DNA of 64,000 bases from Haliotis cracherodii (taxonomy: Eukaryota). The stretch covers positions 23,746,001 through 23,810,000 of the forward strand of contig NW_027266267.1 of NCBI RefSeq assembly GCF_022045235.1, in the 5' to 3' direction. Below, one piece after another: positions 2,675 through 40,590 of the stretch. The position numbers and the translations under genes are program-made. The stretch's first letter is position 1. Each line of letters begins with the position of its first letter. The notes under the pieces were generated by a model, which was given only the letters and a program-made list of their open reading frames with translations, ran no database searches and had not been told where the DNA came from.

Positions 2675-3326
2675 AGTGGTATTTCTATTGAGGAACTTTC
2701 AGTGTCCAAAATAACACATTAACTGAATTGTATGCATAATATATGTTCATGTCTTTTAACAATATGTCATACTCATAGTCACATAATACCAATAAATCAG
2801 TGAATATTTAAATCTGAATTTGTTTTTTTTAAAAGGATGTTTGATTTGTTCAAGAAGGGTACCATGTACGATGACACGCTTTAAGTCAAATCACAGAATC
2901 TGACCAGTATTTTCAGTCTGTGTAATCCACAGAGGGACAGTCGTGTCATGAGTTCATGAGTATCGGTACAAATTGTATGGTCGATGTTGGCTAGTAGCAC
3001 TTAGACACTTGATGTCAACAAGGCTAGATAACTGCTTGGAATGAAAAAGGGTCTTTCAGGAAATGATTGCAGTTTATAAATGAGTGATACTAGTTTAATC
3101 TCATGTTTCTCATTTGACAACATACCTACCTTTGAACCACTCATCATGAGAATAACGTCCAAAATGTTTCCTCAAAATGTATTTACCATGCCTAAAGGGT
3201 GTCTGTTCGTAGTACATTACATTGAAACCTATAAAGGGTGTATTTGTAAGTGGCCATGTCAATAGTTGAAATCAGTACCCAAAAAAATAAACACACGCGT
3301 CGTCTAGTAGTATCTTTCATATTTTT

Positions 3327-4885
3327 TAGGTATAGGATAAAGCACGAATCCGAGGTTATGCTTGGGGATGTAAAACCCGAGGCGACAGGGGAGAGAAAAT
3401 GTAAGACCGAGGGCGAAGCCCCGAGGTCTTACATTTGGAATCCCCGATCACCGAGTGTTTTACATCCCGAGGCATAACCGAGGAGGAGTGTTGTATCTAG
3501 CTTAGAAACCGTGGGGAAACTGAAAATTTCGAGTGTATGAGAACTACGTTTTGATTCCCTGTACTGACGTAAGTTATAGAAAGTTGATCAGATCATGCAT
3601 GTGCCGATTATCACGCACTGCACGTGCAGATTGCTGGTACTTGGGAGAGGTTTTACAATTGTCATGTCACGTGACTAGGACGTAACCAAACATATCCTAG
3701 CTGACCGGATTATCACGTACTGCACGTGCAGATTGCCGATACTTGTGAGAGGTTTTACAATTGTCATGTCACGTGACCAGCTTCTTTTAAACGTGCGCAT
3801 TTCCACAGTAACCACACACTTTTACCGTGAACACGATGAGCGACGAGGACATCCTTCTAACCCATGCTCAGAAAATGGACACTTTCTACTACTCGCCATT
3901 AGCGAAACCCAAGGCAGACAGATGGTTCAGCAATTTCCCGATAGGACACAACACGCTTCAAGGCATAATCAAGTGACTGTGTCGGAATGCAGGAATCGAG
4001 GGAAAGCGAACAAATCACTCTCTCAGGGCAACTTCTGCCACCAGACTATAGAGAGCCAACGTTGATGGGCAACTTAATGGCGAGCAGACAGGTAAAGCAA
4101 CATTTTACGGATTGAAGTTTTTAAAAAAATATTTTTACTTCCATATTGGTGGCAAAGATAACATACAAATTATTTGTGGGCAACTATTTTGGAGTAGTGT
4201 TATCATTTGAAAGGTACAATTGATAGCGTATATGTTTCAGGCCATCGAAGCGAAACTGTGCGCACTTATAATCGGACATTCGAAGATCAGAAACTGCTGG
4301 TGTCGTACATCATCTATGGTGGTGGAAAGCAGAAAAAGTCTGTTACTGCCACTGCCACGAGACCACCTCCAGATGATGCTACTGCGCCGCCGTCAGTTGC
4401 TACTGCTACTGCTATTCCGTCATCTGCAGCACCGCCACCAGCCGTTTCCAGCGAAATTGTCTCTGATCACGACTTGCGAGAGAAAACCAAAAAAGACGCT
4501 TCGCGGAACATTTGTGTCACATTCAACTGCAGCTGAACTGTAAATGGCATGGTTTATGGCATCTCAGAATAAACATTCTTGAAATTGAAACATGTGTGTG
4601 TTGATTTATTTTAAAGAACTAATCCGCTACCCCACGCCTGGTTTGCGCCATGGGTCAGGTTAATAAATCTGTTGGTAAAACCTCAAGTGAGGAGCAGGTC
4701 AAAAAACAACCTGAACAACTCTACCAGAAAGGGACAAGTTAATAAATCTTCAGTATGGACCTCCCTCTGATCAGCAAGTATACTTGTTGGATAATCAGTA
4801 GTGAGCGGTTCATGCAGACTGGCGGTCATTCCACGATAGCAATGCACCCACGAAACAATAGACATAATTTACCCTAGGTTTCTAA
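3327..4885 (+). mobile_element. Crypton-like tyrosine-recombinase DNA element, internally deleted, both ends present
   Basis: Absent at homologous empty sites (12317, 26587, 38939, 48553). Encodes WFSNFPIGHNTL...NHSLRATSATRL...TGHRSETVRTY (DUF3504/YR C-terminal half) with an intron at 4092-4240. This copy has two premature stops. AATAAA at 4568. Confidence 0.85.
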
Positions 4886-5767
4886 TGTTCCATCAGGGTT
4901 GAATAGCAACCTGCTATCTGAGAGTATACTGACCTAACATTTTAATTGGAATGTATGTGTTTGATGTTTGACGCCACACAGCACTACTCCTGCCATACGA
5001 TGGGGTTCTGAAAAGGCAGTCGAAAATACCGGTGTTAGTATCTGGTGCATCTGTGAGTCTCACTGGAAAAGGCTTGTCTGAAATGAATAGGACAGAGTTT
5101 TAGTCTAATCTTTCGTGTCCGTCACGCCCTGCCGGAGACTTGTAAAACGTTAGCTGCCGTTTACCGCGGTCGAACCCTTGAGACACCTTCGGCTATTTGA
5201 AGTTGGAAATCACATGGACTGGTATTCTACAGTTTCTTACACATGTCATTGTTATACACCTTAAACTGCCTCCGTGGTGTATTTGATAGAACATCTACCC
5301 AGACAGCGGATAGTCAGTAGTTCAATTCCCTGACCGCTGTATACCAAAATATATGTAAATATGTTATAATTACTGGTTACCCTTCCGGGTTTAGGGGGAT
5401 TAGTCAAGAACTTGTCGGCCTGGAGTATGACGTACCCGGGTGGGATATCAATGTTAATCGGACGCACGCAAGCGCGAACGCAGGCACGCACGCAATAGCA
5501 TTTAGGTGACGTCATAGGGGGATAGGTGACGTCACGTTCAATAGTGACGTCATCTGGTTTGTTCTCTGACGTTTCCATATTTGTAAAAGTGGGTCAGTGA
5601 CATTTGTGTTGATTGCAGTAAATGTTTTTATTTGATAACAAATTCCATTTTTCAGGGCATTATCATTTGCAGAAGAAGCCAGTCTTCGTCGGGCAGTTAA
5701 TGGAAGACCTCGGGCTTCTGTAAATGATGATACCCTGAAAAATAGCGATACCCTTATAATACTAATT

Positions 5768-6244: not shown

Positions 6245-7342
6245 AGGTCCGTGTGACAGTTTACTGATGCTATGGCAACTGGCAAATTTGTAATTTTAGT
6301 GGTTGTTTCAGAAGGGGTTCTGGTGATTGAAGCATAGGTTTCTTTAGGTTCTGAGGTTGGCATCGACAAAACTAAGTTTGTGAATTGTATTTTGTTTATT
6401 TCCATTTGCTGTTTCTAGATTGGACAGTTTTTAGAGAAAGGTGGGTGATAACCTCAGCAGTTCATGCCTTTTTTATAAATGCTGTCGCAATCTTCTGTTA
6501 CGTGTGTTTTCTCCCAATGTGCAAGTACTCACGTGATGTCCACACTTTTGACATTTGAAGCACCTCAAAGGGTTAGGAGTGAAGATGCAAACCTTGTGAA
6601 TGCAATAGCCTGGTTTGACTGACTTGTGTGCAGTAGGAACAGAAAGCGAAAAGATATATATGTTTGTTTCAACAGTCTCGTTGTCTTTTCGCATTGTGAA
6701 TTGTTTGGCATATGCCACTCATAGATCTTTCATTTCAGAAACAATATCAATAATATCAGCAAACAATCGATCCCAGTCTCGTACAATACCTCTGCTGGTG
6801 TTCAGTGTTCTGTGAGGACACACCAGAAAAGGGACTGCAACAAATCTGTTGCCAATTCGCAACAGATTAGTTGCTTGTTGTTTTCTATTATATTCAAGTG
6901 ATAGGGACCTTGTGTGCAAGTGTTTAATGTTCTTAACTTCTCCTGGAGTGTCATGAAGACGAAGCCAATGACAACTTGATCTTGGACTTGCAGCACAAAG
7001 AATATCCGGATGATCATGACATTCACATGTCAAAGTCAAAAGATAACTTTTTCATCAGATCGGCCTCTGCGCCACAGCCTTCTGGCACGGACATCTAGGT
7101 AATTTTTGGATTTAAGAAGTAGAGTTAAAAAAGAAATGAACATAAATAATCATTTCCATTTTACATATACACTTCCAAGTCAAATAGTGATAGAACAAGA
7201 AGGGTGAGGTGTCCATAGCATGACCAGCCAATTAATAGAGCGGGGCCTATCCGTCCAGGCAACAACCGTCCAGGCAACATAAGGGTCACAGTGATGTATT
7301 GCGTAAAGAGACCAGTACCTCAACTACCAGAATCCCATCCAA
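6245..7342 (-). mobile_element. Decayed I/Nimb-like LINE 5'UTR + ORF1 (gag). Copies: ~13720-14818, 21060-22150, 28010-29107, 34940-35997, 44480-45540
   Basis: SRGIVRD...IPNPLRCFKCQKxGH zinc knuckle with stops; 5' part is homologous to 51180-51320. Confidence 0.75.
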
Positions 7343-9817
7343 ACTATAGAAACTTAGGTTAATCTTTCGTTGAATGGTAGTACTCTACACTGGATGAGTT
7401 CACCAGTTAACGATCATAACGTCATCAAGTATCATTAAGTATCCTTAAGTCTGATACTGGAGATATTTCCTCACGTATCCTAAAGTATCATAATTGTCCT
7501 ATTACCTCAGATGTCTTGAAGTCTGATACTGGTCAATGACCAAATTGAGCAACGCGTTGCTCTCCCTATTCGAACTTGACCTGAGTAGCGTGGGCACTAG
7601 TGGCGGAAAGCCCAATATCTCAGCTTTTTAAGGTGTCACAACTCTGATTCACACCTTTCAACGCGTAACGAAGAGTCATCAGAAAGATGATATTTCCGGC
7701 AGCTTTCGGTAAAGTAACCCGAATTTAATGTGCAAATCTGGGTCAAGAGTTGAATGTTCTTGAAAAAGCATACATGTTTTTCCCACAAAAGATGCACCAT
7801 GGTTGCTTCCCTGAAACTAGCAATCGTGTCCTTGTCCAACTTCTTTCCATAAAGATTTGTAAAAATCTATATTTTATATATTTCAAAAGAGCAAAAGGCA
7901 CCACTTCAGCATATGACTGATACATCTTTCAAGTTTTCGAGCAAATATACTGAATGACTTACGAATTCTGCCCCGGAAACGAACTCCATTCCCAATGGAG
8001 TATATGTCCAACTTGACTAGAGTTAAAAAAGAAATGAACATAAATAATCAAACATTTCCATTTTACATATACACTTTCAAGTCAAATAGTGATAGAACAA
8101 GAAGGGTGAGGTGTCCATAGCATGACCAGCCAATTAATAGAGCGGGGCCTATCCGTCCAGGCAACAACCGTCCAGGCAACATAAGGGTCACAGGGGATGT
8201 ATTGCGTAAAGAGACCAGTACCTCAACTACCAGAATCCCATCCAAACTATAGAAACTTAGGTTAATCTTTCGTTGAATGGTAATACTCTACACTGGATGA
8301 GTTCACCAGTTAACGATCATAACGTCATCAAGTATCATTAAGTATCCTTAAGTCTGATACTGGAGATATTTCCTCACGTATCCTAAAGTATCATAATTGT
8401 CCTATTACCTCAGATGTCTTGAAGTCTGATACTGGTCAATGACCAAATTGAGCAACGCGTTGCTCTCCCTATTCGAACTTGACCTGAGTAGCGTGGGCAC
8501 TAGTGGCGGAAAGCCCAATATCTCAGCTTTTTAAGGTGTCACAACTCTGATTCACACCTTTCAACGCGTAACGAAGAGTCATCAGAAAGATGATATTTCC
8601 GGCAGCTTTCGGTAAAGTAACCCGAATTTAATGTGCAAATCTGGGTCAAGAGTTGAATGTTCTTGAAAAAGCATACATGTTTTTCCCACAAAAGATGCAC
8701 CATGGTCGCTTCCCTGAAACTAGCAATCGTGTCCTTGTCCAACTTCTTTCCATAAAGATTTGTAAAAATCTATATTTTATATATTTCAAAAGAGCAAAAG
8801 GCACCACTTCAGCATATGACTGATACATCTTTCAAGTTTTCGAGCAAATATACTGAATGACTTACGAATTCTGCCCCGGAAACGAACTCCATTCCCAATG
8901 GAGTATATGTCCAACTTGACTAGAGTTAAAAAAGAAATGAACATAAATAATCAAACATTTCCATTTTACATATACACTTTCAAGTCAAATAGTGATAGAA
9001 CAAGAAGGGTGAGGTGTCCATAGCATGACCAGCCAATTAATAGAGCGGGGCCTATCCGTCCAGGCAACAACCGTCCAGGCAACATAAGGGTCACAGGGGA
9101 TGTATTGCGTAAAGAGACCAGTACCTCAACTACCAGAATCCCATCCAAACTATAGAAACTTAGGTTAATCTTTCGTTGAATGGTAATACTCTACACTGGA
9201 TGAGTTCACCAGTTAACGATCATAACGTCATCAAGTATCATTAAGTATCCTTAAGTCTGATACTGGAGATATTTCCTCACGTATCCTAAAGTATCATAAT
9301 TGTCCTATTACCTCAGATGTCTTGAAGTCTGATACTGGTCAATGACCAAATTGAGCAACGCGTTGCTCTCCCTATTCGAACTTGACCTGAGTAGCGTGGG
9401 CACTAGTGGCGGAAAGCCCAATATCTCAGCTTTTTAAGGTGTCACAACTCTGATTCACACCTTTTAACGCGTAACGAAGAGTCATCAGAAAGATGATATT
9501 TCCGGCAGCTTTCGGTAAAGTAACCCGAATTTAATGTGCAAATCTGGGTCAAGAGTTGAATGTTCTTGAAAAAGCATACATGTTTTTCCCACAAAAGATG
9601 CACCATGGTCGCTTCCCTGAAACTAGCAATCGTGTCCTTGTCCAACTTCTTTCCATAAAGATTTGTAAAAATCTATATTTTATATATTTCAAAAGAGCAA
9701 AAGGCACCACTTCAGCATATGACTGATACATCTTTCAAGTTTTCGAGCAAATATACTGAATGACTTACGAATTCTGCCCCGGAAACGAACTCCATTCCCA
9801 ATGGAGTCTAAGTCCAA
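7120..9817 (+). repeat. ~903-bp tandem triplication
   Basis: Units start at 7120, 8018 and 8921, with junction gtccaacttgac|tagagttaaa. Confidence 0.95.
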
Positions 9818-11663: not shown

Positions 11664-14600
11664 AGTGGTATTTCTATTGAGGAACTTTCAGTGTCCAAAA
11701 TAACTGAAATTGTATGCATAATATATGTTCATGTCTTTTAACAATATGTCATACTCATAGTCACATAATACCAATAAATCAGTGAATATTTAAATCTGAA
11801 TTTGTTTTTTTAAAAGGTTGTTTGATTTGTTCAAGAAGGGTACCATGTACGATGACACGCTTTAAGTCAAATTACAGAATCTGACCAGTATTTTCAGTCT
11901 GTGTAATCCACAGAGGGACACTCGTGTCATGAGTTCATGAGTATCGGTACAAACGGTATTGTCGATGTGGGCTAGTAGCACTTAGACACTTGATGTCAAC
12001 AAGGCTAGATAACTGCTTGGAATGACATGAAAAAGGGTCTTTCAGGAAATGATTGCAGTTGATAAATGAGTGATACTAGTTTAATCTCATGTTTCTCATT
12101 TGACAACATACCTATCTTTGAACCACTCATCATGAGAATAACATCCAAAATGTTGTTTCCTCAAAATGTATTTACTATGCCGAAAGGGTGTCTGTTCGTA
12201 GTACATTACATTGAAACCTATAAAGGGTGTATTTGTAAGTGGCCATGTCAATAGTTGAAATCAATACCCCAAAAAAATAAACACACGCGTCGTCTAGAAG
12301 TATCTTTCATATTTTTCAGTGTTCCATCGGGGTTGAATAGCAACCTGCTATCTGAGAGTATATCAACATTTTCATTAGAATGTATGTGTTCGATATTTGA
12401 CGCCTCACAGCACTACTCCTGCCATACGATGGGGTTCTGAAAAGGCAGTCGAAAATACCGGTGCTAGTTTCTCGTGCATCAGTTAGTCTCACTGGAAAAG
12501 GCTTGTCTGAAAGGAATAGGACAGAGTTTTAGTCTAATGCTTCGTGTCCGTCACGCCCTGCCGGAGACGTGTAAAACGTTAGGTGCCGTTTACCGCGGTC
12601 GAACCCTTGAGCCACTTTCGGCTATTTGAAGTTGGAAGTCACATGGACTGGTATTCTACAGTTTCTTACACATGTCACTTGCTATACACTTTAAACCATC
12701 TCCGTGGTGTATTTGATAGAACATCTACCCAGACAGCGGATAGTCAGTAGTTCAATTCCCTGACAGCTGTATACCAAAATATATGTAAATATGTTATAAT
12801 TACTTGTTACCCTTCCAGGTTTTGGGGTGATTAGTCAAGAACTTGTCGGCCTTGAGTATAACGTACCCGGGTGGGTTATCAATGTTTATCTGTCGCATGC
12901 ACGCACGAACGCACGCACGCACGCAATAGCATTTAGGTGTGATGTCATAGGGGATAGGTGACGTCACGTTCAATAGTGACGTCATCTGGTTTGTTCTCTG
13001 ACGTTTTCATATTTGCAAAGTGGGTCAGTGACATTTCTGTTGATTGCAGTAAATGTTTTAAAACCGATATTGTTGTTACTTTTTATTTGATAACAAATTC
13101 CATTTTTCTGGGCATTATCATTTGCAGAAGAAGCCAGTCTTCGTCAGGCAGTTAATGGAAGACCTCGGGCTTCTGCAAATGATGATGCCCTGAAAAATAG
13201 CGTTACCCTTATAATACTGATTGGGGCGGTCGGGTAGCCTAGTGGTTAAAGTGTTCGCTCGTCACGCCAAAGCCCCGGGTTCGATATCCGACATGGGTAC
13301 GATGTGTGAAGCCCATTTTTGGTGTCCCCCGCTGTGATATTGCTGGAATATTGCAAAAAGCGGCGTAAAACCATACTCACTCACTCACTATAATACTAAT
13401 CAACTTAACAGACTCGCGTTGCCTCCTGACGTACAGGCATTAGCCGGTAGTTACACATTACATTTATCACACATTTCCCTGTTTAACACACGCAGTAATG
13501 ATACGAGCTTCACACTCTCTTAGGTGTTTCGATTGCATCTTTATTCCAAGCTGTCTCAGATGTGTCACTTGACTCAGAGAAGTGACTCACTACTCCTCAT
13601 TAGTTTTCAGGATGTGTGAAAGAATAAATATTGCTTTACGCCGCATCAGCAATATTACAGTTAGTCGCGTCGAGAAACAGTATGTGCTTATCAAGAAATG
13701 TTATATAAGGATGATGTTATATAAGTCCGTGTGACAGTTTACTGATGCTGTGGCAACTGGCAAATTTGTCATTTTAGTGGTTGTTTCAGAAGGCGTTCTG
13801 GTGATTGAAGCATAGGTTTCTTTAGGTTCTGAGGTTGGCATCGACAAAACTAGGTTTGTGAATTGTATTTTGTTTATTTCCATTTGCTGTTTCTAGATTG
13901 GACAGTTTTTAGAGAAAGGTGGGTGATCACCTCAGCAGTTCATGCCTTTTTTATAAAGGCTGTCGCAATCTTCTGTTACGTGTGTTTTCTCCCAATGTGC
14001 AAGTTCTTACGTGATGTCCATACTTTTGACATTTGAAGCACCTCAAAGGGTTAGGAATGAAGATGCAAACCTTATGAATGCAATAGCCTGGTTTAAATGA
14101 TTTGTATGCAGTAAGGGCAGAAAACGAAAAGATGTATGTGTTTGTTTCAACAGTCTCGTTGTCTTTTCGCATTGTGAATTGTTTGGCATATGCCACTCAT
14201 TGATCTTTCATTTCAGAAACAATATCAATAATATCAGCAAACAGTTGATCCCAGTCTCGTACAATACCTCTGCTGGTGTTCAGTGTTCTGTGAGGACACA
14301 CCAGAAAAGGGACTGCAACAAATCTGTTGCCAATTCGCAACAGATTAGTTGCTTGTTGTTTTCTATTATATTCAAGTGATAGGGTCCTTGTGTGCAAGCG
14401 TTTAATGTTCTTAACTTCTCCTGGAGTGTCATGAAGACGAAGCCAATGACAACTTGATCTTGGACTTGCAGCACCAAGAATATTTGGACGACATTCACAT
14501 TGAGAAAAGTCAAAAGATAACTTTTTAACAAGATCGGCCTCTGCGCCACAGCCTTCTGGCACTGACATTTAGGTAATGTTTGTATTTAAGAAGTAGAGTT

Positions 14601-18153: not shown

Positions 18154-19701
18154 TAGGTATAGGATAAAGCACGAATCCGAGGTTATGCTTGGGGATGTAA
18201 AACCCGAGGCGACAGGGGAGAGAAAATGTAAGACCGAGGGCGAAGCCCCGAGGTCTTACATTTGGAATCCCCGATCACCGAGTGTTTTACATCCCGAGGC
18301 ATAACCGAGGAGGAGTGTTGTATCTAGCTTAGAAACCGTGGGGAAACTGAAAATTTCGAGTGTATGAGAACTACGTTTTGATTCCCTGTACTGACGTAAG
18401 TTATAGAAAGTTGATCAGATCATGCATGTGCCGATTATCACGCACTGCACGTGCAGATTGCTGGTACTTGGGAGAGGTTTTACAATTGTCATGTCACGTG
18501 ACTAGGACGTAACCAAACATATCCTAGCTCACCGGATTATCACGCACTGCACGTGCAGATTGCCGATACTTGTGAGAGGTTTTACAATTGTCATGTCACG
18601 TGACCAGCTTCTTTTTAAACGTGCGCATTTCCACAGTAACCACACACTTTTACCGTGAACACGATGAGCGACGAGGACATCTTTCTAACCCATGCTCAGA
18701 AAATGGACACTTTCTACTACTTGCCATTAGCGAAACCCAAGGCAGACAGATGGTTCAGCAATTTCCCGATAGGACACAACACGCTTCAAAGCATAATCAA
18801 GCGACTGTGTCGGAATGCAGGAATCGAGGGAAAGCGAACAAATCACTCTCTCAGGGCAACTTCTGCCACCAGACTATACAGAGCCAACGTTAATGGGGAG
18901 CAGACAGGTAAAGCAACATTTTACGGATTGAAGTTTTAAAAAAAATATTTTTACTTCCAAATTGGTGGCAAAGATAACATACAAATTATTTGTGGGCAAC
19001 TATTTTGGAGTAGTGTTATCATTTGAAAGGTACAATTGATAGCGTATATGTTTCAGGCCATCGAAGCGAAACTGTGCGCACTTATAATCGGACATCCGAA
19101 GATCAGAAACTGCTGGTGTCGTACATCATCTATGGTGGTGGAAAGCAGAAAAAGTCTGTTACTGCCACTGCCACGAGACCACCTCCAGATGATGCTACTG
19201 CGCCGCCGTCAGTTGCTACTGCTACTGCTATTCCGTCATCTGCAGCACCGCCACCAGCCGTTTCCAGCGAAATTGTCTCTGATCACGACTTGCGAGAGAA
19301 AACCAAAAAAGACGCTTCGCGGAACATTTGTGTCACATTCAACTTCAGCTGAACTGTAAATGGCATGGTTAATGGCATCTCAGAATAAACATTCTTGAAA
19401 TTGAAACATGTGTGTGTTGATTTATTTTAAAGAACTAATCCGCTACCCCACGCCTGGTTTGCGCCATGGGTCAGGTTAATAAATCTGTTGGTAAAACCTC
19501 AAGTGAGGGGCAGGTCAATAAACAACCTGAACAACTCTACCAGAAAGGGACAAGTTAATATATCTTCAGTATGGACCTCCCTCTGATCAGCAAGTATACT
19601 TGTTGGATAATCAGTAGTGAGCGGTTCATGCAGACTGGCGGTCATTCCACGATAGCAATGCACCCACGAAACAATAGACATAATTTACCCTAGGTTTCTA
19701 A
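18154..19701 (+). mobile_element. Crypton-like element, second copy, both ends present
   Basis: Same ends and hairpin; spliced frame 18664-18907 + 19057-19352 is open (179 aa). Confidence 0.85.
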
Positions 19702-21936
19702 TGTTCCATCAGTGTTGAATAGCAACCTGCTATCTGAGAGTATATTGACCTAACATTTTAATTGGAATGTATGTGTTTGATGTTTGACGCCACACAGCAC
19801 TACTCCTGCCATACGATGGGGTTCTGAAAAGGCAGTCGAAAATACCGGTGTTAGTATCTGGTGCATCTGTGAGTCTCACTGGAAAAGGTTTGTCTGAAAG
19901 GAATAGGACAGAGTTTTAGTCTAATCTTTCGTGTCCGTCACGCCCTGCCGGAGACTTGTAAAACGTTAGCTGCCGTTTACCGCGGTCGAACCCTTGAGAC
20001 ACCTTCGGCTATTTGAAGTTGGAAATCACATGGACTGGTATTCTACAGTTTCTTACACATGTCATTGTTATACACCTTAAACTGCCTCCGTGGTGTATTT
20101 GATAGAACATCTACCCAGACAGCGGATAGTCAGTAGTTCAATTCCCTGACCGCTGTATACCAAAATATATGTAAATATGTTATAATTACTGGTTACCCTT
20201 CCGGGTTTAGGGGGATTAGTCAAGAACTTGTCGGCCTGGAGTATGATGTACCCGGGTGGGTTATCAATGTTAATCGGACGCACGGAAGCACGAACGCAGG
20301 CACGCACGCAATAGCATTTAGGTGACGTCATAGGGGGATAGGTGACGTCACGTTCAATAGTGACGTCATCTGGTTTGTTCTCTGACGTTTCCATATTTGT
20401 AAAAGTGGGTCAGTGATATTTGTGTTGATTGCAGTAAATGTTTTTATTTGATAACAAATTCCATTTTTCTTGGCATTATCATTTGTAGAAGAAGCCAGTC
20501 TTCGTCGGGCAGTTAATGGAAGACCTCGGGCTTCTGCAAATGATGATACCCTGAAAAATAGCGTTACCCTTATAATACTAATTGGGGCGGTCGGGTAGCC
20601 TAGTGGTTAAAGCATTCGCTCGTCACGCCGAAGACCCGGGTTCGATTCCCGACATGGGTACAATGTGTGAAGCCCATTTTTGGTGTCCCCCGCTGTGAAA
20701 TTGCTGGGATATTGCTTAAAGCGGCGTACAACCATACTCAATCACTCACTCACTATAATATTAATCAACTAAACAGAATCGCGTTGCCTCCTGACGTACA
20801 GACATTAGCCGGTAGTTACACATTACATTTATCACACATTCCCCTGTTTAACACACCCAGTGCTTCACACTCTCTTAAGTGTTTCGATAGCAGCTTTATC
20901 CAAACTGTGTCAGTGTGTCAATTGACTCAGAGAAGTGACTCACTACTCCATCATTAGTTTTCAGGATGTGTGAAAGAATAAATATTGCTTTAAGCCGCAC
21001 CAGCAATATTACAGTTAGTCGCGTCGAGAACCAGTATGTGTATATAAAAAATTGTTATATAAGGTCCGTGTGACAGTTTACTGATGCTATGGCAACTGGC
21101 AAATTTGTAATTTTAGTGGTTGTTTCAGAAGGGGTTCTGGTGATTGAAGCATAGGTTTCTTTAGGTTCTGAGGTTGGCATCGACAAAACTAAGTTTGTGA
21201 ATTGTATTTTGTTTATTTCCATTTGCTGTTTCTAGATTGGACAGTTTTTAGAGAAAGATGGGTGATAACCTCAGCAGTTCATGCCTTTTTAATAAATGCT
21301 GTCGCAATCTTCCTTTACGTGTGTTTTCTCCCAATGTGCAAGTACTCACGTGATGTCCACACTTTTGACATTTGAAGCACCTCAAAGGGTTAGGAATGAA
21401 GATGCAAACCTTGTGAATGCAATAGCCTGGTTTGACTGACTTGTGTGCAGTAGGAACAGAAAACGAAAAGATATATATGTTTGTTTCAACAGTCTCGTTG
21501 TCTTTTCGCATTGTGAATTGTTTGGCATATGCCAATCATTGATCTTTCATTTCAGAAACAATATCAATAATATCAGCAAACAATCGATCCCAGTCTCTTA
21601 CAATACCTCTGCTGGTGTTCAGTGTTCTGTGAGGACACACCAGAAAAGGGACTGCAACAAATCTGTTGCCAATTCGCAACAGATTAATTGCTTGTTGTTT
21701 TCTATTATATTCAAGTGATAGGGACCTTGTGTGCAAGCGTTTAATGTTCTTAACTTCTCCTGGAGTGTCATGAAGACGAAGCCAATAACAACTTGATCTT
21801 GGACTTGCAGCACCAAGAATATCCGGATGATCATGACATTCACATGTCAAAGTCAAAAGATAACTTTTTCACCAGATCGGCCTATGCGCCACAGCCTTCT
21901 GGCACTGACATCTAGGTAATGTTTGTATTTAAGAAG

Positions 21937-24611
21937 TAGAGTTAAAAAAGAAATGAACATAAATAATCATTTCCATTTTACATATACACTTCCAAGTCAA
22001 ATAGTGATAGAACAAGAAGGGTGAGGTGTCCATAGCATGACCAGCCAATTAATAGAGCGGGGCCTATCCTAACAACCGTCCAGGCAACATAAGGGTCACA
22101 GGGGTGTATTGCGTAAAGAGACCAGTACCTCAACTACCAGAATCCCATCCAAACTATAGAAACTTAGGTTAATCTTTCGTTGAATGGTAATACTCTACAC
22201 TGGATGAGTTCACCAGTTAACGATCATAACGTCATCAAGTATCATTAAGTATCCTTAAGTCTGATACTGGAGATATTTCCTCACGTATCCTAAAGTATCA
22301 TAATTGTCCTATTACCTCAGATGTCTTGAAGTCTGATACTGGTCAATGACCAAATTGAGCAACGCGTTGCTCTCCCTATTCGAACTTGACCTGAGTAGCG
22401 TGGGCACTAGTGGCGGAAAGCCCAATATCTCAGCTTTTTAAGGTGTCACAACTCTGATTCACACCTTTCAACGCGTAACGAAGAGTCATCAGAAAGATGA
22501 TATTTCCGGCAGCTTTCGGTAAAGTAACCCGAATTTAATGTGCAAATCTGGGTCAAGAGTTGAATGTTCTTGAAAAAGCATACATGTTTTTCCCACAAAA
22601 GATGCACCATGGTCGCTTCCCTGAAACTAGCAATCGTGTCCTTGTCCAACTTCTTTCCATAAAGATTTGTAAAAATCTATATTTTATATATTTCAAAAGA
22701 GCAAAAGGCACCACTTCAGCATATGACTGATACATCTTTCAAGTTTTCGAGCAAATATACTGAATGACTTACGAATTCTGCCCCGGGAACGAACTCCATT
22801 CCCAATGGAGTATATGTCCAACTTGACTAGAGTTAAAAAAGAAATGAACATAAATAATCAAACATTTCCATTTTACATATACACTTTCAAGTCAAATAGT
22901 GATAGAACAAGAAGGGTGAGGTGTCCATAGCATGACCAGCCAATTAATAGAGCGGGGCCTATCCTAACAACCGTCCAGGCAACATAAGGGTCACAAGGGT
23001 GTATTGCGTAAAGAGACCAGTACCTCAACTACCAGAATCCCATCCAAACTATAGAAACTTAGGTTAATCTTTCGTTGAATGGTAATACTCTACACTGGAT
23101 GAGTTCACCAGTTAACGATCATAACGTCATCAAGTATCATTAAGTATCCTTAAGTCTGATACTGGAGATATTTCCTCACGTATCCTAAAGTATCATAATT
23201 GTCCTATTACCTCAGATGTCTTGAAGTCTGATACTGGTCAATGACCAAATTGAGCAACGCGTTGCTCTCCCTATTCGAACTTGACCTGAGTAGCGTGGGC
23301 ACTAGTGGCGGAAAGCCCAATATCTCAGCTTTTTAAGGTGTCACAACTCTGATTCACACCTTTCAACGCGTAACGAAGAGTCATCAGAAAGATGATATTT
23401 CCGGAAGGTTTCGGTAGAGTAACCCGAATTTAATGTGCAAATCTGGGTCAAGAGTTGAATGTTCTTGAAAAAGCATACATGTTTTTCCCACAAAAGATGC
23501 ACCATGGTCGCTTCCCTGAAACTAGCAATCGTGTCCTTGTCCAACTTCTTTCCATAAAGATTTGTAAAAATCTATATTTTATATATTTCAAAAGAGCAAA
23601 AGGCACCACTTCAGCATATGACTGATACATCTTTCAAGTTTTCGAGCAAATATACTGAATGACTTACGAATTCTGCCCCGGAAACGAACTCCATTCCCAA
23701 TGGAGTATATGTCCAACTTGACTAGAGTTAAAAAAGAAATGAACATAAATAATCAAACATTTCCATTTTACATATACACTTTCAAGTCAAATAGTGATAG
23801 AACAAGAAGGGTGAGGTGTCCATAGCATGACCAGCCAATTAATAGAGCGGGGCCTATCCTAACAACCGTCCAGGCAACATAAGGGTCACAAGGGTGTATT
23901 GCGTAAAGAGACCAGTACCTCAACTACCAGAATCCCATCCAAACTATAGAAACTTAGGTTAATCTTTCGTTGAATGGTAATACTCTACACTGGATGAGTT
24001 CACCAGTTAACGATCATAACGTCATCAAGTATCATTAAGTATCCTTAAGTCTGATACTGGAGATATTTCCTCACGTATCCTAAAGTATCATAATTGTCCT
24101 ATTACCTCAGATGTCTTGAAGTCTGATACTGGTCAATGACCAAATTGAGCAACGCGTTGCTCTCCCTATTCGAACTTGACCTGAGTAGCGTGGGCACTAG
24201 TGGCGGAAAGCCCAATATCTCAGCTTTTTAAGGTGTCACAACTCTGATTCACACCTTTCAACGCGTAACGAAGAGTCATCAGAAAGATGATATTTCCGGC
24301 AGCTTTCGGTAAAGTAACCCGAATTTAATGTGCAAATCTGGGTCAAGAGTTGAATGTTCTTGAAAAAGCATACATGTTTTTCCAACAAAAGATGCACCAT
24401 GGTCGCTTCCCTGAAACTAGCAATCGTGTCCTTGTCCAACTTCTTTCCATAAAGATTTGTAAAAATCTATATTTTATATATTTCAAAAGAGCAAAAGGCA
24501 CCACTTCAGCATATGACTGATACATCTTTCAAGTTTTCGAGCAAATATACTGAATGACTTACGAATTCTGCCCCGGAAACGAACTCCATTCCCAATGGAG
24601 TCTAAGTCCAA
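21937..24611 (+). repeat. ~895-bp tandem triplication
   Basis: Units start at 21937, 22828 and 23723, with the same junction. Confidence 0.95.
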
Positions 24612-25936: not shown

Positions 25937-28900
25937 AGTGGTATTTCTATTGAGGAACTTTCAGTGTCCAAAATAACTGAAATTGTATGCATAATATATG
26001 TTCATGTCTTTTAACAATATGTCATACTCATAGTCACATAATACCAATAAATCAGTGAATATTTAAATCTGAATTTGTTTTTTTAAAAGGTTGTTTGATT
26101 TGTTCAAGAAGGGTACCATGTACGATGACACGCTTTAAGTCAAATCACAGAATCTGACCAGTATTTTCAGTCTGTGTAATCCACAGAGGGACACTCGTGT
26201 CATGAGTTCATGAGTATCGGTACAAACGGTATTGTCGATGTGGGCTAGTAGCACTTAGACACTTGATGTCAACAAGGCTAGATAACTGCTTGGAATGACA
26301 TGAAAAAGGGTCTTTCAGGAAATGATTGCAGTTGATAAATGAGTGATACTAGTTTAATCTCATGTTTCTCATTTGACAACATACCTACCTTTGAACCACT
26401 CATCATGAGAATAACATCCAAATTGTTTCCTAAAAATGTATTTACTATGCCTGAAGGGTTTCTGTTCTTAGTACATTACATTGAAACCTATAAAGGGTGT
26501 ATTTGTAAGTGGCCATGTCAATAGTTGAAATCAATACCCAAAAAAAATAAACACACGCGTCGTCTAGAAGTATCTTTCATATTTTTCAGTGTTCCATCGG
26601 GGTTGAATAGCAACCTGCTATCTAAGAGTATATTGGCCTAACATTTTCATTAGAATGTATGTGTTCGATATTTGACGCCTCACAGCACTACTCCTGCCAT
26701 ACGATGGGGTTCTGAAAAGGCAGTCGAAAATACCGGTGCTAGTTTCTCGTGCATCAGTTAGTCTCACTGGAAAAGGTTTGTCTGAAAGGAATAGGACAGA
26801 GTTTTAGTCTAATGTTTCGTGTCCGTCACGCCCTGCCGGAGACTTGTAAAACGTTAGGTGCCGTTTACCACGGTCGAACCCTTGAGCCACTTTCGGCTAT
26901 TTGAAGTGGGAAGTCACATGGACTGGTATTCTACAGTTTCTTACACATGTCACTTGCTATACACTTTAAACCACCTCCGTGGTGTATTTGATAGAACATC
27001 TACCCAGACAGCGGATAGTCAGTAGTTCAATTCCCTGACCGCTGTATACCAAAATATATGTAAATATGTTATAATTACTTGTTACCCTTCCAGGTTTTGG
27101 GGTGATTAGTCAAGAACTTGTCGGCCTTGAGTATAACGTACCCGGGTGGGTCATCAATGTTAATCTGTCGCATGCACGCACGAACGCACGAACGCACGAA
27201 CGCGCGCACGCACGCAATAGCAATTAGGTGACGTCCTAGGGGATAGGTGACGTCACGTTCAATAGTGACGTCATCTGGTTTGTTCTCTGACGTTTTCATA
27301 TTTGTAAAAGTGGGTCAGTGACATTTGTGTTGATTGCAGTAAATGTTTTAAAACCGATATTGTTGTTACTTTTTATTTGATAACAAATTCCATTTTTCTG
27401 GGCATTATCATTTGCAGAAGAAGCCAGTCTTCGTCAGGCAGTTAATGGAAGACCTCGGGCTTCTGCAAATGATGATGCCCTGAAAATAGCGTTACCCTTA
27501 TAATACTGATTGGGGCGGTCGGGTAGCCTAGTGGTTAAAGTGTTCGCTCGTCACGCCAAAGACCCGGGTTCGATATCCGACATGGGTACAATGTGTGAAG
27601 CCCATTTTTGGTGTCCCCCGCTGTGATATTGCTGGAATATTGAAAAAATCGGCGTAAAACCATACTCACTCACTCACTATAATACTAATCAACTTAACAG
27701 ACTCGCGTTGCCTCCTGACGTACAGGCATTAGCCGGTAGTTACACATTACATTTATCACACATTTCCCTGTTTAACACACGCAGTAATGATACGTGCTTC
27801 ACACTCTCTTAGGTGTTTCGATTGCAGCTTTATTCCAAGCTGTCTCAGATGTGTCACTTGACTCAGAGAAATGACTCACTACTCCTCATTAGTTTTCAGG
27901 ATGTGTGAAAGAATAAATATTGCTTTACGCCGCATCAGCAATATTACAGTTAGTCGCCTCGAGAACCAGTATGTGCTTATCAAGAAATGTTATATAAGGA
28001 TGATGTTATATAAGTCCGTGTGACAGTTTACTGATGCTGTGGCAACTGGCAAATTTGTCATTTTAGTGGTTGTTTCAGAAGGCGTTCTGGTGATTGAAGC
28101 ATAGGTTTCTTTAGGTTTTGAGGTTGGCATCGACAAAACTAGGTTTGTGAATTGTATTTTGTTTATTTCCATTTGCTGTTTCTAGATTGGACAGTTTTTA
28201 GAGAAAGATGGGTGATCACCTCAGCAGTTCATGCCCTTTTTTATAAAGGCTGTCGCAATCTTCTGTTACGTGTGTTTTCTCCCAATGTGCAAGTACTTAC
28301 GTGATGTCCATACTTTTGACATTTGAAGCACCTCAAAGGGTTAGGAATGAAGCTGCAAACCTTATGAATGCAATAGCCTGGTTTAAATGATTTGTATGCA
28401 GTAAGGGCAGAAAACGAAAAGATGTATGTGTTTGTTTCAACAGTCTCGTTGTCTTTTCGCATTGTGAATCGTTTGGCATATGCCACTCATTGATCTTTCA
28501 TTTCAGAAACAATATCAATAATATCAGCAAACAGTCGATCCCAGTCTCGTACAATACCTCTGCTGGTGTTCAGTGTTCTGTGAGGACACACCAGAAAAGG
28601 GACTGCAACAAATCTGTTGCCAATTCGCAACAGATTAGTTGCTTGTTGTTTTCTATTATATTCAAGTGATAGGGTCCTTGTGTGCAAGAGTTTAATGTTC
28701 TTAACTTCTCCTGGAGTGTCATGAAGACGAAGCCAATGACAACTTGATCTTGGACTTGCAGCACCAAGAATATCTGGACGACATTCACATTGAGAAAAGT
28801 CAAAAGATAACTTTTTAACCAGATCGGCCTTTGCGCCACAGCCTTCTGGCACTGACATTTAGGTAATGTTTGTATTTAAGAAGTAGAGTTAAAATAAATT

Positions 28901-31710: not shown

Positions 31711-32172
31711 AGTGGTATTTCAATTGAGGAACTTTCAGTGTCCAAAATAACACATTAACTGAAATTGTATGCATAATATATGTTCATGTCTTTTAACAAT
31801 ATGTCATACTCATAGTCACATAATACCAATAAATCAGTGAATATTTAAATCTGAATTTGTTTTTTTTAAAAGGATGTTTGATTTGTTCAAGAAGGGTACC
31901 ATGTACGATGACACGCTTTAAGTCAAATCACAGAATCTGACCAGTATTTTCAGTCTGTGTAATCCACAGAGGGACTGTCGTGTCATGAGTTCATGAGTAT
32001 CGGTACAAACGGTATTGTCGATGTGGGCTAGTAGCACTTAGACACTTGATGTCATCAAGGCTAGATAACTGCTTGGAATGACATGAAAAAGGGTCTTTCA
32101 GGAAATGATTGCAGTTTATAAATGAGTGATACTAGTTTAATCTAATGTTTCTCATTTGACAACATACCTACC

Positions 32173-33613
32173 TTTGGAATCCCCGATCACCGAGTGTTTT
32201 ACATCCCGAGGCATAATCGAGGAGGAGTGTTGTATCTAGCTTAGAAACCTTGGGGAAACTGAAAATTTCGAGTGTATCAGAACTACGTTTTGATTCCCTG
32301 TACTGACGTAAGTTATAGAACGTTGATCAGATCATGCATGTGCCGATTATCACGCACTGCAAGTGCAGATTGCTGGTACTTGGGAGAGGTTTTACAATTG
32401 TCATGTCACGTGACTAGGACGTAACCAAACATATCCTAGCTCACCGGATTATCACGCACTGCACGTGCAGATTGCCGATACTTGTGAGAGGTTTTACAAT
32501 TGTCATGTCACGTGACCAGCTTCTTTTTAAACGTGCGCATTTCCACAGTAACCACACACTTTTACCGTGAACACGATGAGCGACGAGGACATCTTTCTAA
32601 CCCATGCTCAGAAAATGGACACTTTCTACTACTCGCCATTAGCGAAACCCAAGGCAGACAGATGGTTCAGCAATTTCCCGATAGGACACAACACGCTTCA
32701 AAGCATAATCAAGCGACTGTGTCGGAATGCAGGAATCGAGGGAAAGCGAACAAATCACTCTCTCAGGGCAACTTCTGCCACCAGACTATACAGAGCCAAC
32801 GTTAATGGGGAGCAGACAGGTACAGCAACATTTTACGGATTGAAGTTTTAAAAAAAATATTTTTACTTCCAAATTGGTGGCAAAGATAACATACAAATTA
32901 TTTGTGGGCAACTATTTTGGAGTAGTGTTATCATTTGAAAGGTACAATTGATAGCGTATATGTTTCAGGCCATCGAAGCGAAACTGTGCGCACTTATAAT
33001 CGGACATCCGAAGATCAGAAACTGCTGGCGTCGTACATCATCTATGGTGGTGGAAAGCAGAAAAAATCTGTTACTGCCACTGCCACGAGACCACCTCCAG
33101 ATGATGCTACTGCGCCGCCGTCAGTTGCTACTGCTACTGCTATTCCGTCATCTGCAGCACCACCACCAGCCGTTTCCAGCGAAATTGTCTCTGATCACGA
33201 GTTGCGAGAGAAAACCAAAAAAGACGCTTCGCGGAACATTTGTGTCACATTCAACTTCAGCTGAACTGTAAATGGCATGGTTTATGGCATCTCAGAATAA
33301 ACATTCTTGAAATTGAAACATGTGTGTGTTGATTTATTTTAAAGAACTAATCCGCTACCCCACGCCTGGTTTGCGCCATGGGTCAGGTTAATAAATCTGT
33401 TGGTAAAACCTCAAGTGAGGGGCAGGTCAATAAACAACCTGAACAACTCTACCAGAAAGGGACAAGTTAATAAATCTTCAGTATGGACCTCCCTCTGATC
33501 AGCAAGTATACTTGTTGGATAATCAGTAGTGAGCGGTACATGCAGACTGGCGGTCATTCCACGATAGCAATGCACCCACGAAACAATAGACATAATTTAC
33601 CCTAGGTTTCTAA
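32173..33613 (+). mobile_element. Crypton-like element, left end deleted
   Basis: ~300-bp deletion at a tttg microhomology removes the left end, left hairpin arm and loop; intron 32820-32968. Confidence 0.8.
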
Positions 33614-36600
33614 TGTTCCATCAGGGTTGAATAGCAACCTGCTATCTGAGAGTATATTGACCTAACATTTTAAATGGAATGTATGTGTTTGATGTTTGAC
33701 GCCACACAGCACTACTCCTGCCATACCATGGGGTTCTGAAAAGGCAGTCGAAAATACTGGTGTTAGTATCTGGTGTATCTGTGAGTCTCACTGGAAAAGG
33801 CTTGTCTGAAAGGAATAGGACAGAGTTTTAGTCTAATGTTTCGTGTCCGTCACGCCCTGCCGGAGACGTGTAAAACGTTAGGTGCCGTTTACCACGGTCG
33901 AACCCTTGAGCCACTTTCGGCTATTTGAAGTGGAAAGTCACATGGACTGGTATTCTACAGTTTCTTACACATGTCACTTGCTATACACTTTAAACCATCT
34001 CCGTGGTGTATTTGATAGAACATCTACCCAGACAGCGGATAGTCAGTAGTTCAATTCCCTGACCGCTGTATACCAAAATATATGTAAATATGTTATAATT
34101 ACTTGTTACCCTTCCGGGTTTAGGGGGATTAGTCAAGAACTTGTCGGCCTGGAGTTTAACGTACCCGGGAGGGTTATCAATGTTAATCTGACGCATGCAC
34201 GCACGAACGCACGCACGCAGTAGCATTTAGGTGACGTCATTGGGGATAGGTGACGTCACGTTCAATAGTGACGTCATCTGGTTTGTTCTCTGACGTTTCC
34301 ATATTTGTAAAAGTGGGTCAGTGACATTTGTGTTGATTGCAGTAAATGTTTTAAAACCGATATTATTGTTTCTTTTTATTTGATAACAAATTCCATTTTT
34401 CTGGGCATTATCATTTGCAGAAGTAGCCAGTCTTCGTCGGGCAGTTAATGGAAGACCTCGGGCTTCTGCAAATGATGATGCCCTGAAAAATAGCGTTACC
34501 CTTATAATACTAATTAGGGCGGTCAGGTAGCCTAGTGGTTAAAGCGTTCGCTCGTCACGCCAAAGACCCGGGTTCAATTCCCGACATGGGTACAATGTGT
34601 GCTGCCGAATTCTGGTGTCCCCCGCTGTGATATTGCTGGAATATTGCTAAAAGCGGCGTAAAACCATACTCACTCACTCACTCACTCACTATAATACTAA
34701 TCAACTTAACAGACTCGCGTTGCCTCCTGACGTACAGGCATTAGCCGGTAGTTACACATTACATTTATCACACATTCCCCTGTTTAACACACCCAGTAAT
34801 GATACGTGCTTCACACTCAGGATGTTTCAGGATTTGTGAAAGAATAAATATTGCTTTACGCCGCATCAGCAATATTACAGTTAGTCGCCTCGAGAACCAG
34901 TATGTGCATATAAAGAACTGTTATATAAGGATGATGTTATATAAGTCCGTGTGACAGTTTACTGATGCTGTGGCAACTGGCAAATTTGTAATTTTAGTGG
35001 TTGTTTCAGAAGGGGTTCTGGTGATTGAAGCATAGGTTTCTTTAGGTTCTGAGGTTGGCATCGACAAAACTAAGTTTGTGAATTGTATTTTGTTTATTTC
35101 CATTTGCTGTTTCTAGATTGGACAGTTTTTAGAGAAAGATGGGTGATAACCTCAGCAGTTCATGCCTTTTTTATAAATGCTGTCGCAATCTTCCGTTACG
35201 TGTGTCTTTTCCCAATGTGCAAGTACTCATGTGATGTCCATACTTTTGACATTTGAATCACCTCAAAGGGTTAGGAATGAAGATGCAAACCTTATGAATG
35301 CAATAGCCTGGTTTAAATGATTTGTATGCAGTAAGGGCAGAAAACGAAAAGATGTATGTGTTTGTTTCAACAGTCTTGTTGTCTTTTCGCATTGTGAATC
35401 GTTTGGCATATGCCACTCAGCAAACAATCGATCCCAGTCTCTTACAATACCTTTGCTGGTGTTCAGTGTTCTGTGAGGAGAGATCAGAACAGGGACTGCA
35501 ACAAATCTATTGCCGATTACAGATTAGTTGCTTGTTGTTTTTCATTATATTCAAGTGATAGGGACCTTGTGTGCAAGCGTTTAATGTTCTTTACTTCTCC
35601 TGGAGTGTCATGAAGACGAAGCCAATTACAACTTGATCTTGGACTTGCAGCACCAAGAATATCCGGATGACATTCACATTGAGAAAAGTCAAAAGATAAC
35701 TTTTTAACCAGATCGGCCTATGCGCCACAGCCTTTTGGCACTGACATTTAGGTAATTTTTGCATTTAAGAAGTAGAGTTAAAATAAATGAACATGAATAA
35801 TCAAACATTTCCATTTTACATATACACTTCCAAGTCAAATAGTGATAGAACAAGAAGAGTAAGGTGTCCATAGCATGGCCAGCCAATTGATAGGGCGGGG
35901 CCTAACCTAACAACCCTCCAGGCAACATAAGGGTCACGTACAGGGGTGTTTTGCGTAAAGGTACCAGTACCTCAACTACCAGAATCCAATCCTCCACCGA
36001 GGACTTCGTGTGAAAAACTTAGCAATTTTGGGGTGTGAAACTATAGAAACTTAGGTTAATCTTTCGTTGATTGGTAATACCCTACACTGGATGAGTTCAC
36101 CAGTTAACGATCATAACGATCACATTGCCCTCGGTATTCAAAAGTATGATACTGGTCATATTGGCGCAAGTATCAAAATGGCTCTAGTATCCTTAAGTCT
36201 GATACTGGAGATATTTCCTCACGTATCCTAAAGTATCATAATTGTCCTATTACCTCAGATGTCTTGAAGTCTGATACTGGTCAATTACCAAATTGAGCAA
36301 CGCGTTGCTCTCCCTATTCGAAATTTACCTGAGTAGCGTGGGCACTAGTGGCGGAAAGCCCAATATCTCAGCTTTTTAAGGTGTCACAACTCTGATTCAC
36401 ACCTTTTAACGCGTAACGAAGAGTCATCAGAAAGATGATATTTCCGGCAGCTGTCGGTAAAGTAACGCAAATTTAATGTGCAAATCTGGGTCAAGAGTTG
36501 AATGTTCTTGAAAAAGCATACATGTTTTTCCCACAAAAGATGCACCATGGTCGCTTCCGTGAAACTAGCAATCGTGTCCTTGTCCAACTTCTTTCCATAA

Positions 36601-39281: not shown

Positions 39282-40590
39282 GCATTAATCTTCAGTAATC
39301 CATGCTTGACGTAATAGGAGCCAGACGGGATCTGATGGTCGAGCTAGTAGACTTGGTTGATGCATGTCACGGCATCCAACTGCGAATATCGATGCCCACG
39401 ATATCAGTCACTGGAATGTCTGGTCCAGATTCGATTTCGATTCGTCATATAGCTGGACTATTGCTGAGTACGGCGTTAAAGAACACCAAAGAGAACTAAG
39501 CTCATTAACATACTATCTCAATAATATTCACCCTCATCTGAAAATACTGTATGACTGTTCTACATGTACATGGGCAACATCTGATAGGCGGCAATCCGGC
39601 TGATATTAGAACGAAATTACACTGGACAAGTTCATCTGGGGCAATATGATCGTTTTCAGACTCAGTATTATAGCTAAAATGGACAGAAATATCATTAAAC
39701 CGCCCGCATGTTATCAGAAATCAGCGGGGCCACTGTAACTTGATGATGCCCTCATATTGCTTGACGACGGGCCATTATCAAGCCCGTTGTTGGGTGACGT
39801 CATAGGTAGGGATAGGTGACGTCACGTTCAATGATAACAAATTCCATCCATATTAACTATAATAACGGTAACGCTATTTTTCATGGCATTATCATTTGCA
39901 GAAGAAGCAAGTCTTTTCAACTGTGTGAATGTTTTCAGGATGTGTGAATGAATAAATATTGCTTGACGCCGCATCTGCAATATAACTGTTAGTCGCGTCG
40001 AGAACCAGTATGTGCATATAAAGAACTGTTGTGTAAGGATGATAGAAAATATCAGGCACATATCACAGACAAACGAGTGAAACTTACTATCTGCTGCAAA
40101 ATCTTTATGTCCTCAAAAAGATGAATTTATTTCAAGAATGCTAAAATCTTAATATAGTTATGAACTTGAGTAAAACGTGCTTTCATAGAATAAAGTATTT
40201 ATGACAGATTAAAGCTGGATACGCCGTGATATAACTGGAATACTGTTAAAAGCGGCACTAAAACCAACTCACTGACTGCTTCAAAATGCAAGGAACGAAA
40301 TACTTTAAATATTAAAAAAGGTGTTTAAACACGTTCTCTAATGAAGCGTGTGTCACTGGGTGGCAACGTGGAACAGATGTTCGCACATTTCTTGGCCAAT
40401 GAGTGCAATGCAGTACAAGTCAATACAGATACATGGTAAGGGCTGAGAGTTTTCTGATACAGTTATGGAACATGTCTACCATTTCAATTTACACACATTA
40501 CCTCTATAAAAGAAAGGTATACTGCGTTACCACATCATAGTGTAGTTGTAAACCACATCACTATTGAGTATCAAGAACATTGTATCAAAT

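Follow-up and report, generated by a model that had tools for sequence, protein, structure and literature searches.

How does an animal Crypton, a DNA transposon moved by a tyrosine recombinase, present its two ends to the enzyme? This question is raised by a small, dead Crypton copy in the genome of Haliotis cracherodii (GCF_022045235.1, contig NW_027266267.1), within a window of 64,000 nucleotides (positions 23,746,001 to 23,810,000, forward strand). This copy carries a long hairpin-forming sequence that is complete only when the two ends of the element are joined, which suggests, without proving, that these transposons recombine through a folded circular DNA. An earlier note had reported that the joined ends are complementary to an internal region, and had proposed that the element may move through a single-stranded circle whose fold creates the attachment site. 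The observation of end-to-internal complementarity was confirmed and held up better than first described. The proposed interpretation is supported only in part. The features of the element are collected in Table 1.

Table 1. Coordinates of the Crypton copy, its features and related sites in the window (position 1 is the first base of the window; a slash marks the point of insertion)
Positions	Strand	Feature	Basis
3330-4885	+	Non-autonomous Crypton copy of 1,556 bp, from 5' GTATAGGATAAAG to GGTTTCTAA 3'	Empty paralogous sites and independent copies; longer relatives carry about 1.35 kb more sequence at element position 534/535
3330-3412	+	Left terminus and 5' arm of the quasi-palindrome	Inverted repeat; DNA fold with z = -8; covariation among four families
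3413-3419	+	Apical GCGAAGC, the DNA mini-hairpin motif GCGNAGC	GCGAA kept in all four families, full 7-mer only in this family; motif described in PMC13037366
3420-3500	+	3' arm of the palindrome; its last part, 3488-3500, faces the left terminus 3331-3345	Inverted repeat, DNA fold and covariation
3501-3521	+	Internal complementary stretch facing G3330 and the right terminus 4866-4885	Pair-by-pair comparison; match unique within the element; present in all copies
4866-4885	+	Right terminus, the missing outer part of the 5' arm of the palindrome	15 right ends in the genome within 2 mismatches, 14 of them identical over 22 nt
3606-3780	+	Two 73-bp direct repeats (3606-3678 and 3708-3780), each holding CACGTG-type palindromes, upstream of the ATG; may be a promoter or binding region	Present in all copies; role suggested from sequence alone
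3836-4091	+	Tyrosine-recombinase exon holding the HSLRAT box, with in-frame stops at 3974 and 4049; N-terminal half of the gene deleted	Translation; uninterrupted versions in other copies match PF00589
4092-4240	+	Putative GT-AG intron of 149 nt, retained in the copies	Read from the sequence; same exon pair in other copies
4241-4536	+	Last exon, (G)HRS..VRTY, holding the catalytic-tyrosine region and a low-complexity tail	Translation; present in other copies
18157-19701	+	Second full copy, at the same site in a duplicated host unit	Comparison of host units
32169-33613	+	Copy lacking element positions 1-100 and about 195 bp of host flank; the deletion ends about 10 nt past the hairpin apex	Comparison of host units
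41703-43147	+	Sister of the 32.2-kb copy, carrying the same deletion	Comparison of host units
12310-12330	+	Empty paralogous site reading ...TTTTTCAG/TGTTCC...	Flanks contiguous at 12319/12320
26589/26590		Empty paralogous site	Flanks contiguous
38941/38942		Empty paralogous site	Flanks contiguous
48555/48556		Empty paralogous site	Flanks contiguous

The ends of the element were determined first. The window consists of a segmentally repeated host unit of 9.5-14.8 kb, and the sequences that flank the insert (3201-3329 and 4886-5000) are contiguous at the four empty paralogous sites of Table 1. The empty and filled sites differ by the insert alone, and no target bases are duplicated or lost. The three other filled units in the window carry the same insertion, copied along with the host unit. 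Elsewhere, the 1.18-Gb assembly (80 contigs) holds about 12 independent copies with unrelated flanks, and these share the starting and ending sequences of the window copy. The true ends therefore lie one base to the right of those given in the earlier note (3329 and 4884). There is no pair of terminal inverted repeats, no long terminal repeat and no target-site duplication, in agreement with the note on the inverted repeats and the duplication. Twelve flank pairs show 0-5 nt of chance microhomology, and the only inverted repeat is the subterminal hairpin.

The element was identified from its coding remnants, with each exon searched separately. Uninterrupted versions of the HSLRAT exon in three copies, including the second copy in the window, match PF00589 at 28.6-33.7 bits against a cut-off of 27.1. 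The first catalytic arginine was not located, since the N-terminal half of the gene is deleted here and decayed in the longer copies. The additional 1.35 kb of the longer copies encodes a QRICH1-type domain, for which PF25561 scores 43.1 bits against a cut-off of 30.8 in the longer copy at locus L032. PF12012 (DUF3504) scores 22-24 bits, which is below its cut-off. The only database hit is a Haliotis rufescens protein carrying PF25561, at 57% identity. The longest relative is about 2.97 kb once an 11.7-kb nested insertion is set aside, and the lists of open reading frames and Pfam scans gave only recombinase-type hits, with no reverse transcriptase or RNase H. Taken together, this is an internally deleted, non-autonomous Crypton of the DUF3504/QRICH1 (CryptonA-like) kind.

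A remnant of a DIRS-type retrotransposon was considered, since an internal stretch complementary to both termini placed side by side is the defining feature of DIRS-1, where it is essential (PMC7192593) and serves to restore the ends during reverse transcription. This feature is present here. However, the inverted terminal repeats at opposite ends and the RT/RH (and MT) genes of DIRS elements are not: the two inverted arms are adjacent at the left end, no reverse transcriptase or RNase H hit was found, the full-length relative is only about 3.0 kb with QRICH1/DUF3504-type recombinase domains, and the copies retain the putative intron. The DIRS reading was therefore rejected and is considered very unlikely, although the logic of the junction is alike.

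The complementarity was then examined base by base. The counts given in the earlier note are exact: 4868-4884 against 3503-3519 gives 14/17, and 15/17 in the copies at 32.2 and 41.8 kb. With the corrected ends the match improves. Bases 4877-4885 pair perfectly with 3502-3510, G3330 pairs with C3501, and 16 of the last 20 bases (4866-4885) are Watson-Crick paired with 3502-3521. Among about 3,070 20-mers of the element on both strands, the next best score against this internal stretch is 12/20. The left end 3335-3345 pairs with 3488-3498 through G:T wobbles and a small internal loop, as described in the note, and in most other copies this part pairs better than in the window copy. The hairpin 3336-3497 is highly nonrandom, with z of about -8.

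Joined ends were constructed in silico (40 + 215 nt) and folded with DNA parameters. In every copy tested (six copies of this family and the single copies of two sister families, C and D), the minimum-energy fold extends the left-end hairpin across the junction. A quasi-palindrome of about 190 nt is thereby completed, with the crossover point A4885/G3330 inside the stem. On one side of the crossover is a perfect arm of 9-10 bp (GGTTTCTAA·G), and on the other is an irregular stretch at +2 to +7 followed by a second arm. The irregularity occurs in all three families with known ends, as a 4×2 loop, a 2-nt bulge or a single mismatch. The joined-end sequence was not found anywhere in the 1.18-Gb assembly at up to 3 mismatches, which rules out tandem copies as the place where the full stem exists. 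The full stem can therefore exist only after the ends are joined or brought together. A search of Rfam returned nothing relevant.

Conservation and covariation of the pairing, which the earlier note had set as a test, were examined within and between families. Within the family no signal was found: pairwise substitution divergence is 2-7% in all regions, the termini are no better conserved than the interior (2-7% against 4-5%), and no selection is claimed at this level. Between families there is a signal. Three loci, L049 (family B), L055 (family C) and L059 (family D), carry hairpins that are 23-26% diverged from this one, while the rest of each element cannot be aligned apart from the last 33 nt or so of the right end in C and D. 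Each sister family is represented by a single, possibly decayed copy, that of family B lacks a readable right end, and roughly 20 further hairpin loci were left out of the comparison. In an alignment of 10 sequences 94% of cells pair, and 10 pairs have changed on both sides, compared to 3.7 ± 1.4 in shuffles (0 of 500 shuffles reached 10) and 0-5 when the partners are slid.

The stem that crosses the junction also covaries in part. Position -4 is C:G in this family, A:T in C and G:T in D. Position -12 is C:G here and G:C in D, and position -13 is C:G, T:A and A:T in the three families. A 2×2 mismatch, TA/GT at -10/-11, is kept in all three families with known right ends. In family D the left-end bases GTGAG are mirrored in its internal stretch, where this family has GTATAG opposite CTAG. 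However, family C pairs only 8+2 of 20 across the junction, and pairing beyond -13 is seen only in this family.

These data bear on the possibility that the palindrome is a relic without present function, in which an old palindromic duplication happened to include the attachment region and was inherited by related families. The family is small (about 14 copies) and consists of fossils, and its termini are no better conserved than its interior. On the other hand, the families differ by about 25% in the hairpin yet keep 90-95% of the pairs, the rest of the elements cannot be aligned, and the nonrandom GA/GA loops described below are conserved. This reading is considered improbable.

The internal loops of the hairpin differ between the two strands. 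Both arms carry CCGAGG, where a true palindrome would have CCGAGG opposite CCTCGG. The sense strand would form 4-5 tandem 5'-GA/5'-GA mismatches in a pyrimidine-GA-purine context (CGAG 6 against CTCG 0-1), whereas the other strand would form TC/TC mismatches. These loops and the GCGAA apex fit intrastrand folding of the sense strand. The loops are conserved in four families, and at two positions they are replaced by Watson-Crick TC/GA pairs in families C and D. CCGAGG on both arms could instead be a directly repeated protein-binding motif. The sense strand folded 1.3-8 kcal/mol better in 8 of 8 junction constructs, but standard nearest-neighbor energies for the window hairpin alone are equal for the two strands (-42.7 against -42.0 kcal/mol). 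An excess of G:T over A:C (17:4) also appears among presumably neutral private changes (7:2), and the structure call itself favors G:T; this bias was dropped as evidence.

The apex of the hairpin is the very stable mini-hairpin motif that marks priming sites on single-stranded phage DNA and on ssi signals (PMC13037366). The hairpin also lies upstream of the direct repeats and of the recombinase ATG. It might therefore be mainly a replication-priming or transcription signal, such as a single-strand initiation site for complementary-strand synthesis, with its extension across the junction being secondary. This does not explain why the stem continues exactly across the crossover point with covariation, nor why the only sequence alignable between families, apart from the hairpin, is the last 33 nt or so of the right end. 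This alternative is doubtful as the main function, but it presupposes single-stranded DNA and is compatible with the explanation favored below.

The insertion sites were analyzed next. Twelve sites show T-T-A at -4 to -2 (9-10 of 12) and T-A at +8/+9 (9 of 12), a weakly palindromic TTAN/N6/NTAA pattern as expected for a recombinase dimer with a 6-bp stagger. Identity to the element at +1 to +6 is only about 44%. A double exchange with a mismatched overlap should give two products after replication, but none of the 12 insertions shows the alternative product expected if a 6-8-bp heteroduplex segregated. All 12 keep GTATAG on the left (L006 is mutated there) and TTTCTAA on the right. L006 was considered as the alternative product and rejected because its right flank is not GTATAG. 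The single genome-wide case of TTTCTAA followed by GTATAA, at L007, also has a normal left end. This pattern fits one defined strand exchange resolved by replication, as at attC×attI and CTX-phi, but the sample is small and a duplex circle resolved by replication would look the same.

Rearrangements of the copies were also compared. Four internal deletions and one truncation in other copies (L007, L008, L010, L012 and L017) have a breakpoint within about 3 nt of the apex. Together with the deletion shared by the 32.2- and 41.8-kb copies, these are six of 9-10 events in all. Several rearrangements start at the outer edge of the palindrome, at element position 192/193. L017 is truncated at both ends and was otherwise uninformative. 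This is ordinary palindrome instability, as expected if the hairpin forms in vivo. It shows that the sequence can fold in the chromosome, not that folding is used for transposition.

A site that acts only as duplex DNA remains the main alternative. In this view the excised circle is double-stranded throughout, and the palindrome is two inverted sets of recombinase or accessory binding sites, comparable to the FRT-bearing inverted repeats of the 2-micron plasmid or the arm sites of lambda attP, with the internal stretch as an inverted second copy of the core. The core GGTTTNTAAG is conserved as sequence at both places, and the mismatch at -10/-11 is conserved rather than repaired. As duplex, 3490-3510 looks like an inverted pair of GTTTYTA half-sites, CCGAGG recurs 6-7 times in one orientation like a binding motif, both strands fold equally by standard parameters, and classical tyrosine recombinases act on duplex sites (PMC3212892). 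Against this, no copy has its ends at the internal site, since all 12 use the same junction. Arm positions far from any plausible core covary to keep pairing, and the alternation of GA/GA loops with Watson-Crick TC/GA between families preserves pairing rather than the motif. The low target identity at +1 to +6 and the single junction product do not fit a homology-tested double exchange. The duplex-only reading is considered possible but unlikely.

The explanation favored here, held to be about as likely as not, is that the feature is the cis-acting recombination region of a Crypton, a quasi-palindrome that integration has cut in two. About 172 nt (3330-3501) would remain at the left end and the last 20 nt or so would sit 1.5 kb away at the right end. 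Only when the ends are joined, as in an excised circle, do the right and left ends together face the internal stretch 3488-3521. It is proposed that this intrastrand-paired form is the attachment site recognized by the recombinase, either as a hairpin on the sense strand of a single-stranded or transiently unwound circle or as one arm of a cruciform. It is further proposed that integration uses one defined strand exchange at degenerate TTAN/ targets and is completed by replication, as with integron attC and CTX-phi attP(+). The ends, the junction-spanning complementarity, its recurrence and covariation in sister families, the strand-asymmetric motifs and the target preference were established directly from the sequences. 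That the folded state, rather than a duplex or cruciform, is the substrate of the recombinase, that only one strand is exchanged with resolution by replication, and that a single-stranded circle exists are inferred. The evidence for a single-stranded substrate and one strand exchange is only indirect, namely sharp, one-sided junctions at targets with little identity, and the folded single-stranded circle is a reasonable but unproven reading.

This arrangement was compared with known systems. In DIRS-1, single-stranded DNA intermediates are documented, the element encodes a tyrosine recombinase, and the internal complementary region defines or holds the circle junction (PMC7192593). Here no ends need restoring from a short transcript, the adjacent arms form one hairpin rather than terminal repeats at opposite ends, and the complementary stretch is imperfect and about 34 nt long, against 88 nt in DIRS-1. 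Like CTX-phi attP(+) and integron attC (PMC2727003, PMC3458562 and references in PMC9345347), the present sequence is an imperfect palindrome whose fold forms two arms around an irregular center holding the crossover point. In those folded single-stranded sites one strand is favored by unpaired or noncanonical features, a single strand exchange produces sharp insertion boundaries, and little identity to the target is needed. Those systems are bacterial and use XerCD or IntI, whereas here the fold is about 190 nt long, the crossover lies near the base of the stem and is interrupted by integration, and the evidence is from sequence alone. The strand-biased integrative elements SE-6283 and SE-6945 of Vibrio are reported to generate a circular copy using only one strand as template, without leaving an empty donor site (PMC9345347), which is a precedent for copy-out by this enzyme class. 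They are bacterial, encode four genes, and have no reported junction-spanning palindrome.

Cryptons of fungi, oomycetes and animals, as described so far, encode only a tyrosine recombinase, have no terminal inverted repeats or target-site duplication, are presumed to pass through a circular intermediate, and include non-autonomous derivatives (PMC3212892). Fungal Cryptons have terminal direct repeats of 4-6 bp. For animal Cryptons, either no terminal repeats (PMC3212892) or poorly conserved ones (PMC13465315) are reported, and no description of a subterminal palindrome completed by end joining was found in the literature that could be searched.

A more far-reaching and tentative reading, considered rather unlikely but not excluded, is that animal Cryptons move by copy-out of one strand. 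The internal complementary stretch would act as a splint that aligns the two ends, the excised sense strand would close into a single-stranded circle, and its folded junction would be the attachment site. One strand exchange would insert it at TTAN/ targets, and the GCGAA-tipped hairpin would also prime second-strand synthesis. This would be the first eukaryotic DNA transposon using folded single-stranded DNA with a tyrosine recombinase, and it would make the DIRS internal complementary region an inheritance from a Crypton-like ancestor.

The mechanism by which Cryptons move has been inferred only by analogy, and no cis-acting end structure has been described for animal Cryptons in the literature that could be searched. 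This locus provides exact ends, verified against empty sites, and a defined candidate attachment site of about 210 nt. It also provides concrete predictions: a cleavage point at A/G, a favored strand, an internal stretch that should be required, and a target motif. A short structure-specified site of this kind could be of interest as a recombination tool. If the folded-strand reading holds, recombination of folded single-stranded DNA by tyrosine recombinases would extend from bacteria (integrons, CTX-phi) to animal transposons, and Cryptons would be linked mechanistically to DIRS retrotransposons.

The host DNA is organized as a segmental array of units of 9.5-14.8 kb that share 91-99% identity. 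Some of these units carry the Crypton and some are empty. Tandem sub-repeats of 900 bp, with 98-99% identity, are nested within the array at two places. A second palindrome, unrelated to that of the Crypton, occurs once per host unit and has arms of 58 nt that are 81% complementary. A separate unit of 199 bp has inverted ends of 23 nt. Positions 39666-49486 can be read as one element with the same architecture, but this reading is doubtful since the span matches the period of the host repeat. A further tandem array has a period of 77 bp, with about 9 copies at 95-97% identity. The coordinates of these features, and of those described below, are collected in the table.

Coordinates of additional features within the window and in Crypton loci (L) on contigs (C) of the genome (G000)
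Feature	Position
Segmental array of host units	window 1-50000
Nested 900-bp tandem sub-repeats	window 7120-9817 and 21937-24611
Second palindrome, one per host unit	window 49339-49487; also 43937-44033, 5647-5766, 13102-13221, 20463-20582, 27392-27510, 34395-34514
Unit with inverted ends	window 39666-39864
Tandem array, 77-bp period	window 55374-56069
Direct repeats inside the Crypton	window 3606-3678 and 3708-3780
tRNA-derived SINE at or near the edge of the palindrome	L025:1693 and L051 (G000:C56:68729895 and 68732193); L059
Nested insertion in the longest copy	L031:2579 to L034:4325 (G000:C80:4946578-4958325)
Minisatellite expansion in copy L032 (G000:C9)	L032:2560-4110
Sequence missing from the window copies	window 3522 (element position 193)
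Filled versus empty sites	window 3326 versus 12316, 26586, 38938, 48552

A tRNA-derived SINE, which is very abundant in this genome (6,193 candidates at first look), is located exactly at the outer edge of the Crypton palindrome in one locus and near it in family D, a sister family represented by L059. In copy L005, a tandem duplication of 261 bp ends at the same edge (element position about 192). The window copies lack about 55 nt that follow the internal complementary stretch in most other copies, which consist of a T-run and then GCAATAAAATGCC....

The longest copy of the family is split by a nested insertion of 11.7 kb. In copy L032, the minisatellite expansion is found inside the recombinase reading frame. 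The two direct repeats inside the element are 73 bp each, both contain the palindromes GCACGTGC and TCACGTGAC, and are located just upstream of the recombinase ATG. These repeats are kept in all copies and may be a promoter or binding region. The filled sites read TTAG at -4 to -1, where all four empty sites read TCAG. This difference could be a simple substitution in the filled lineage, or a trace of the exchange.
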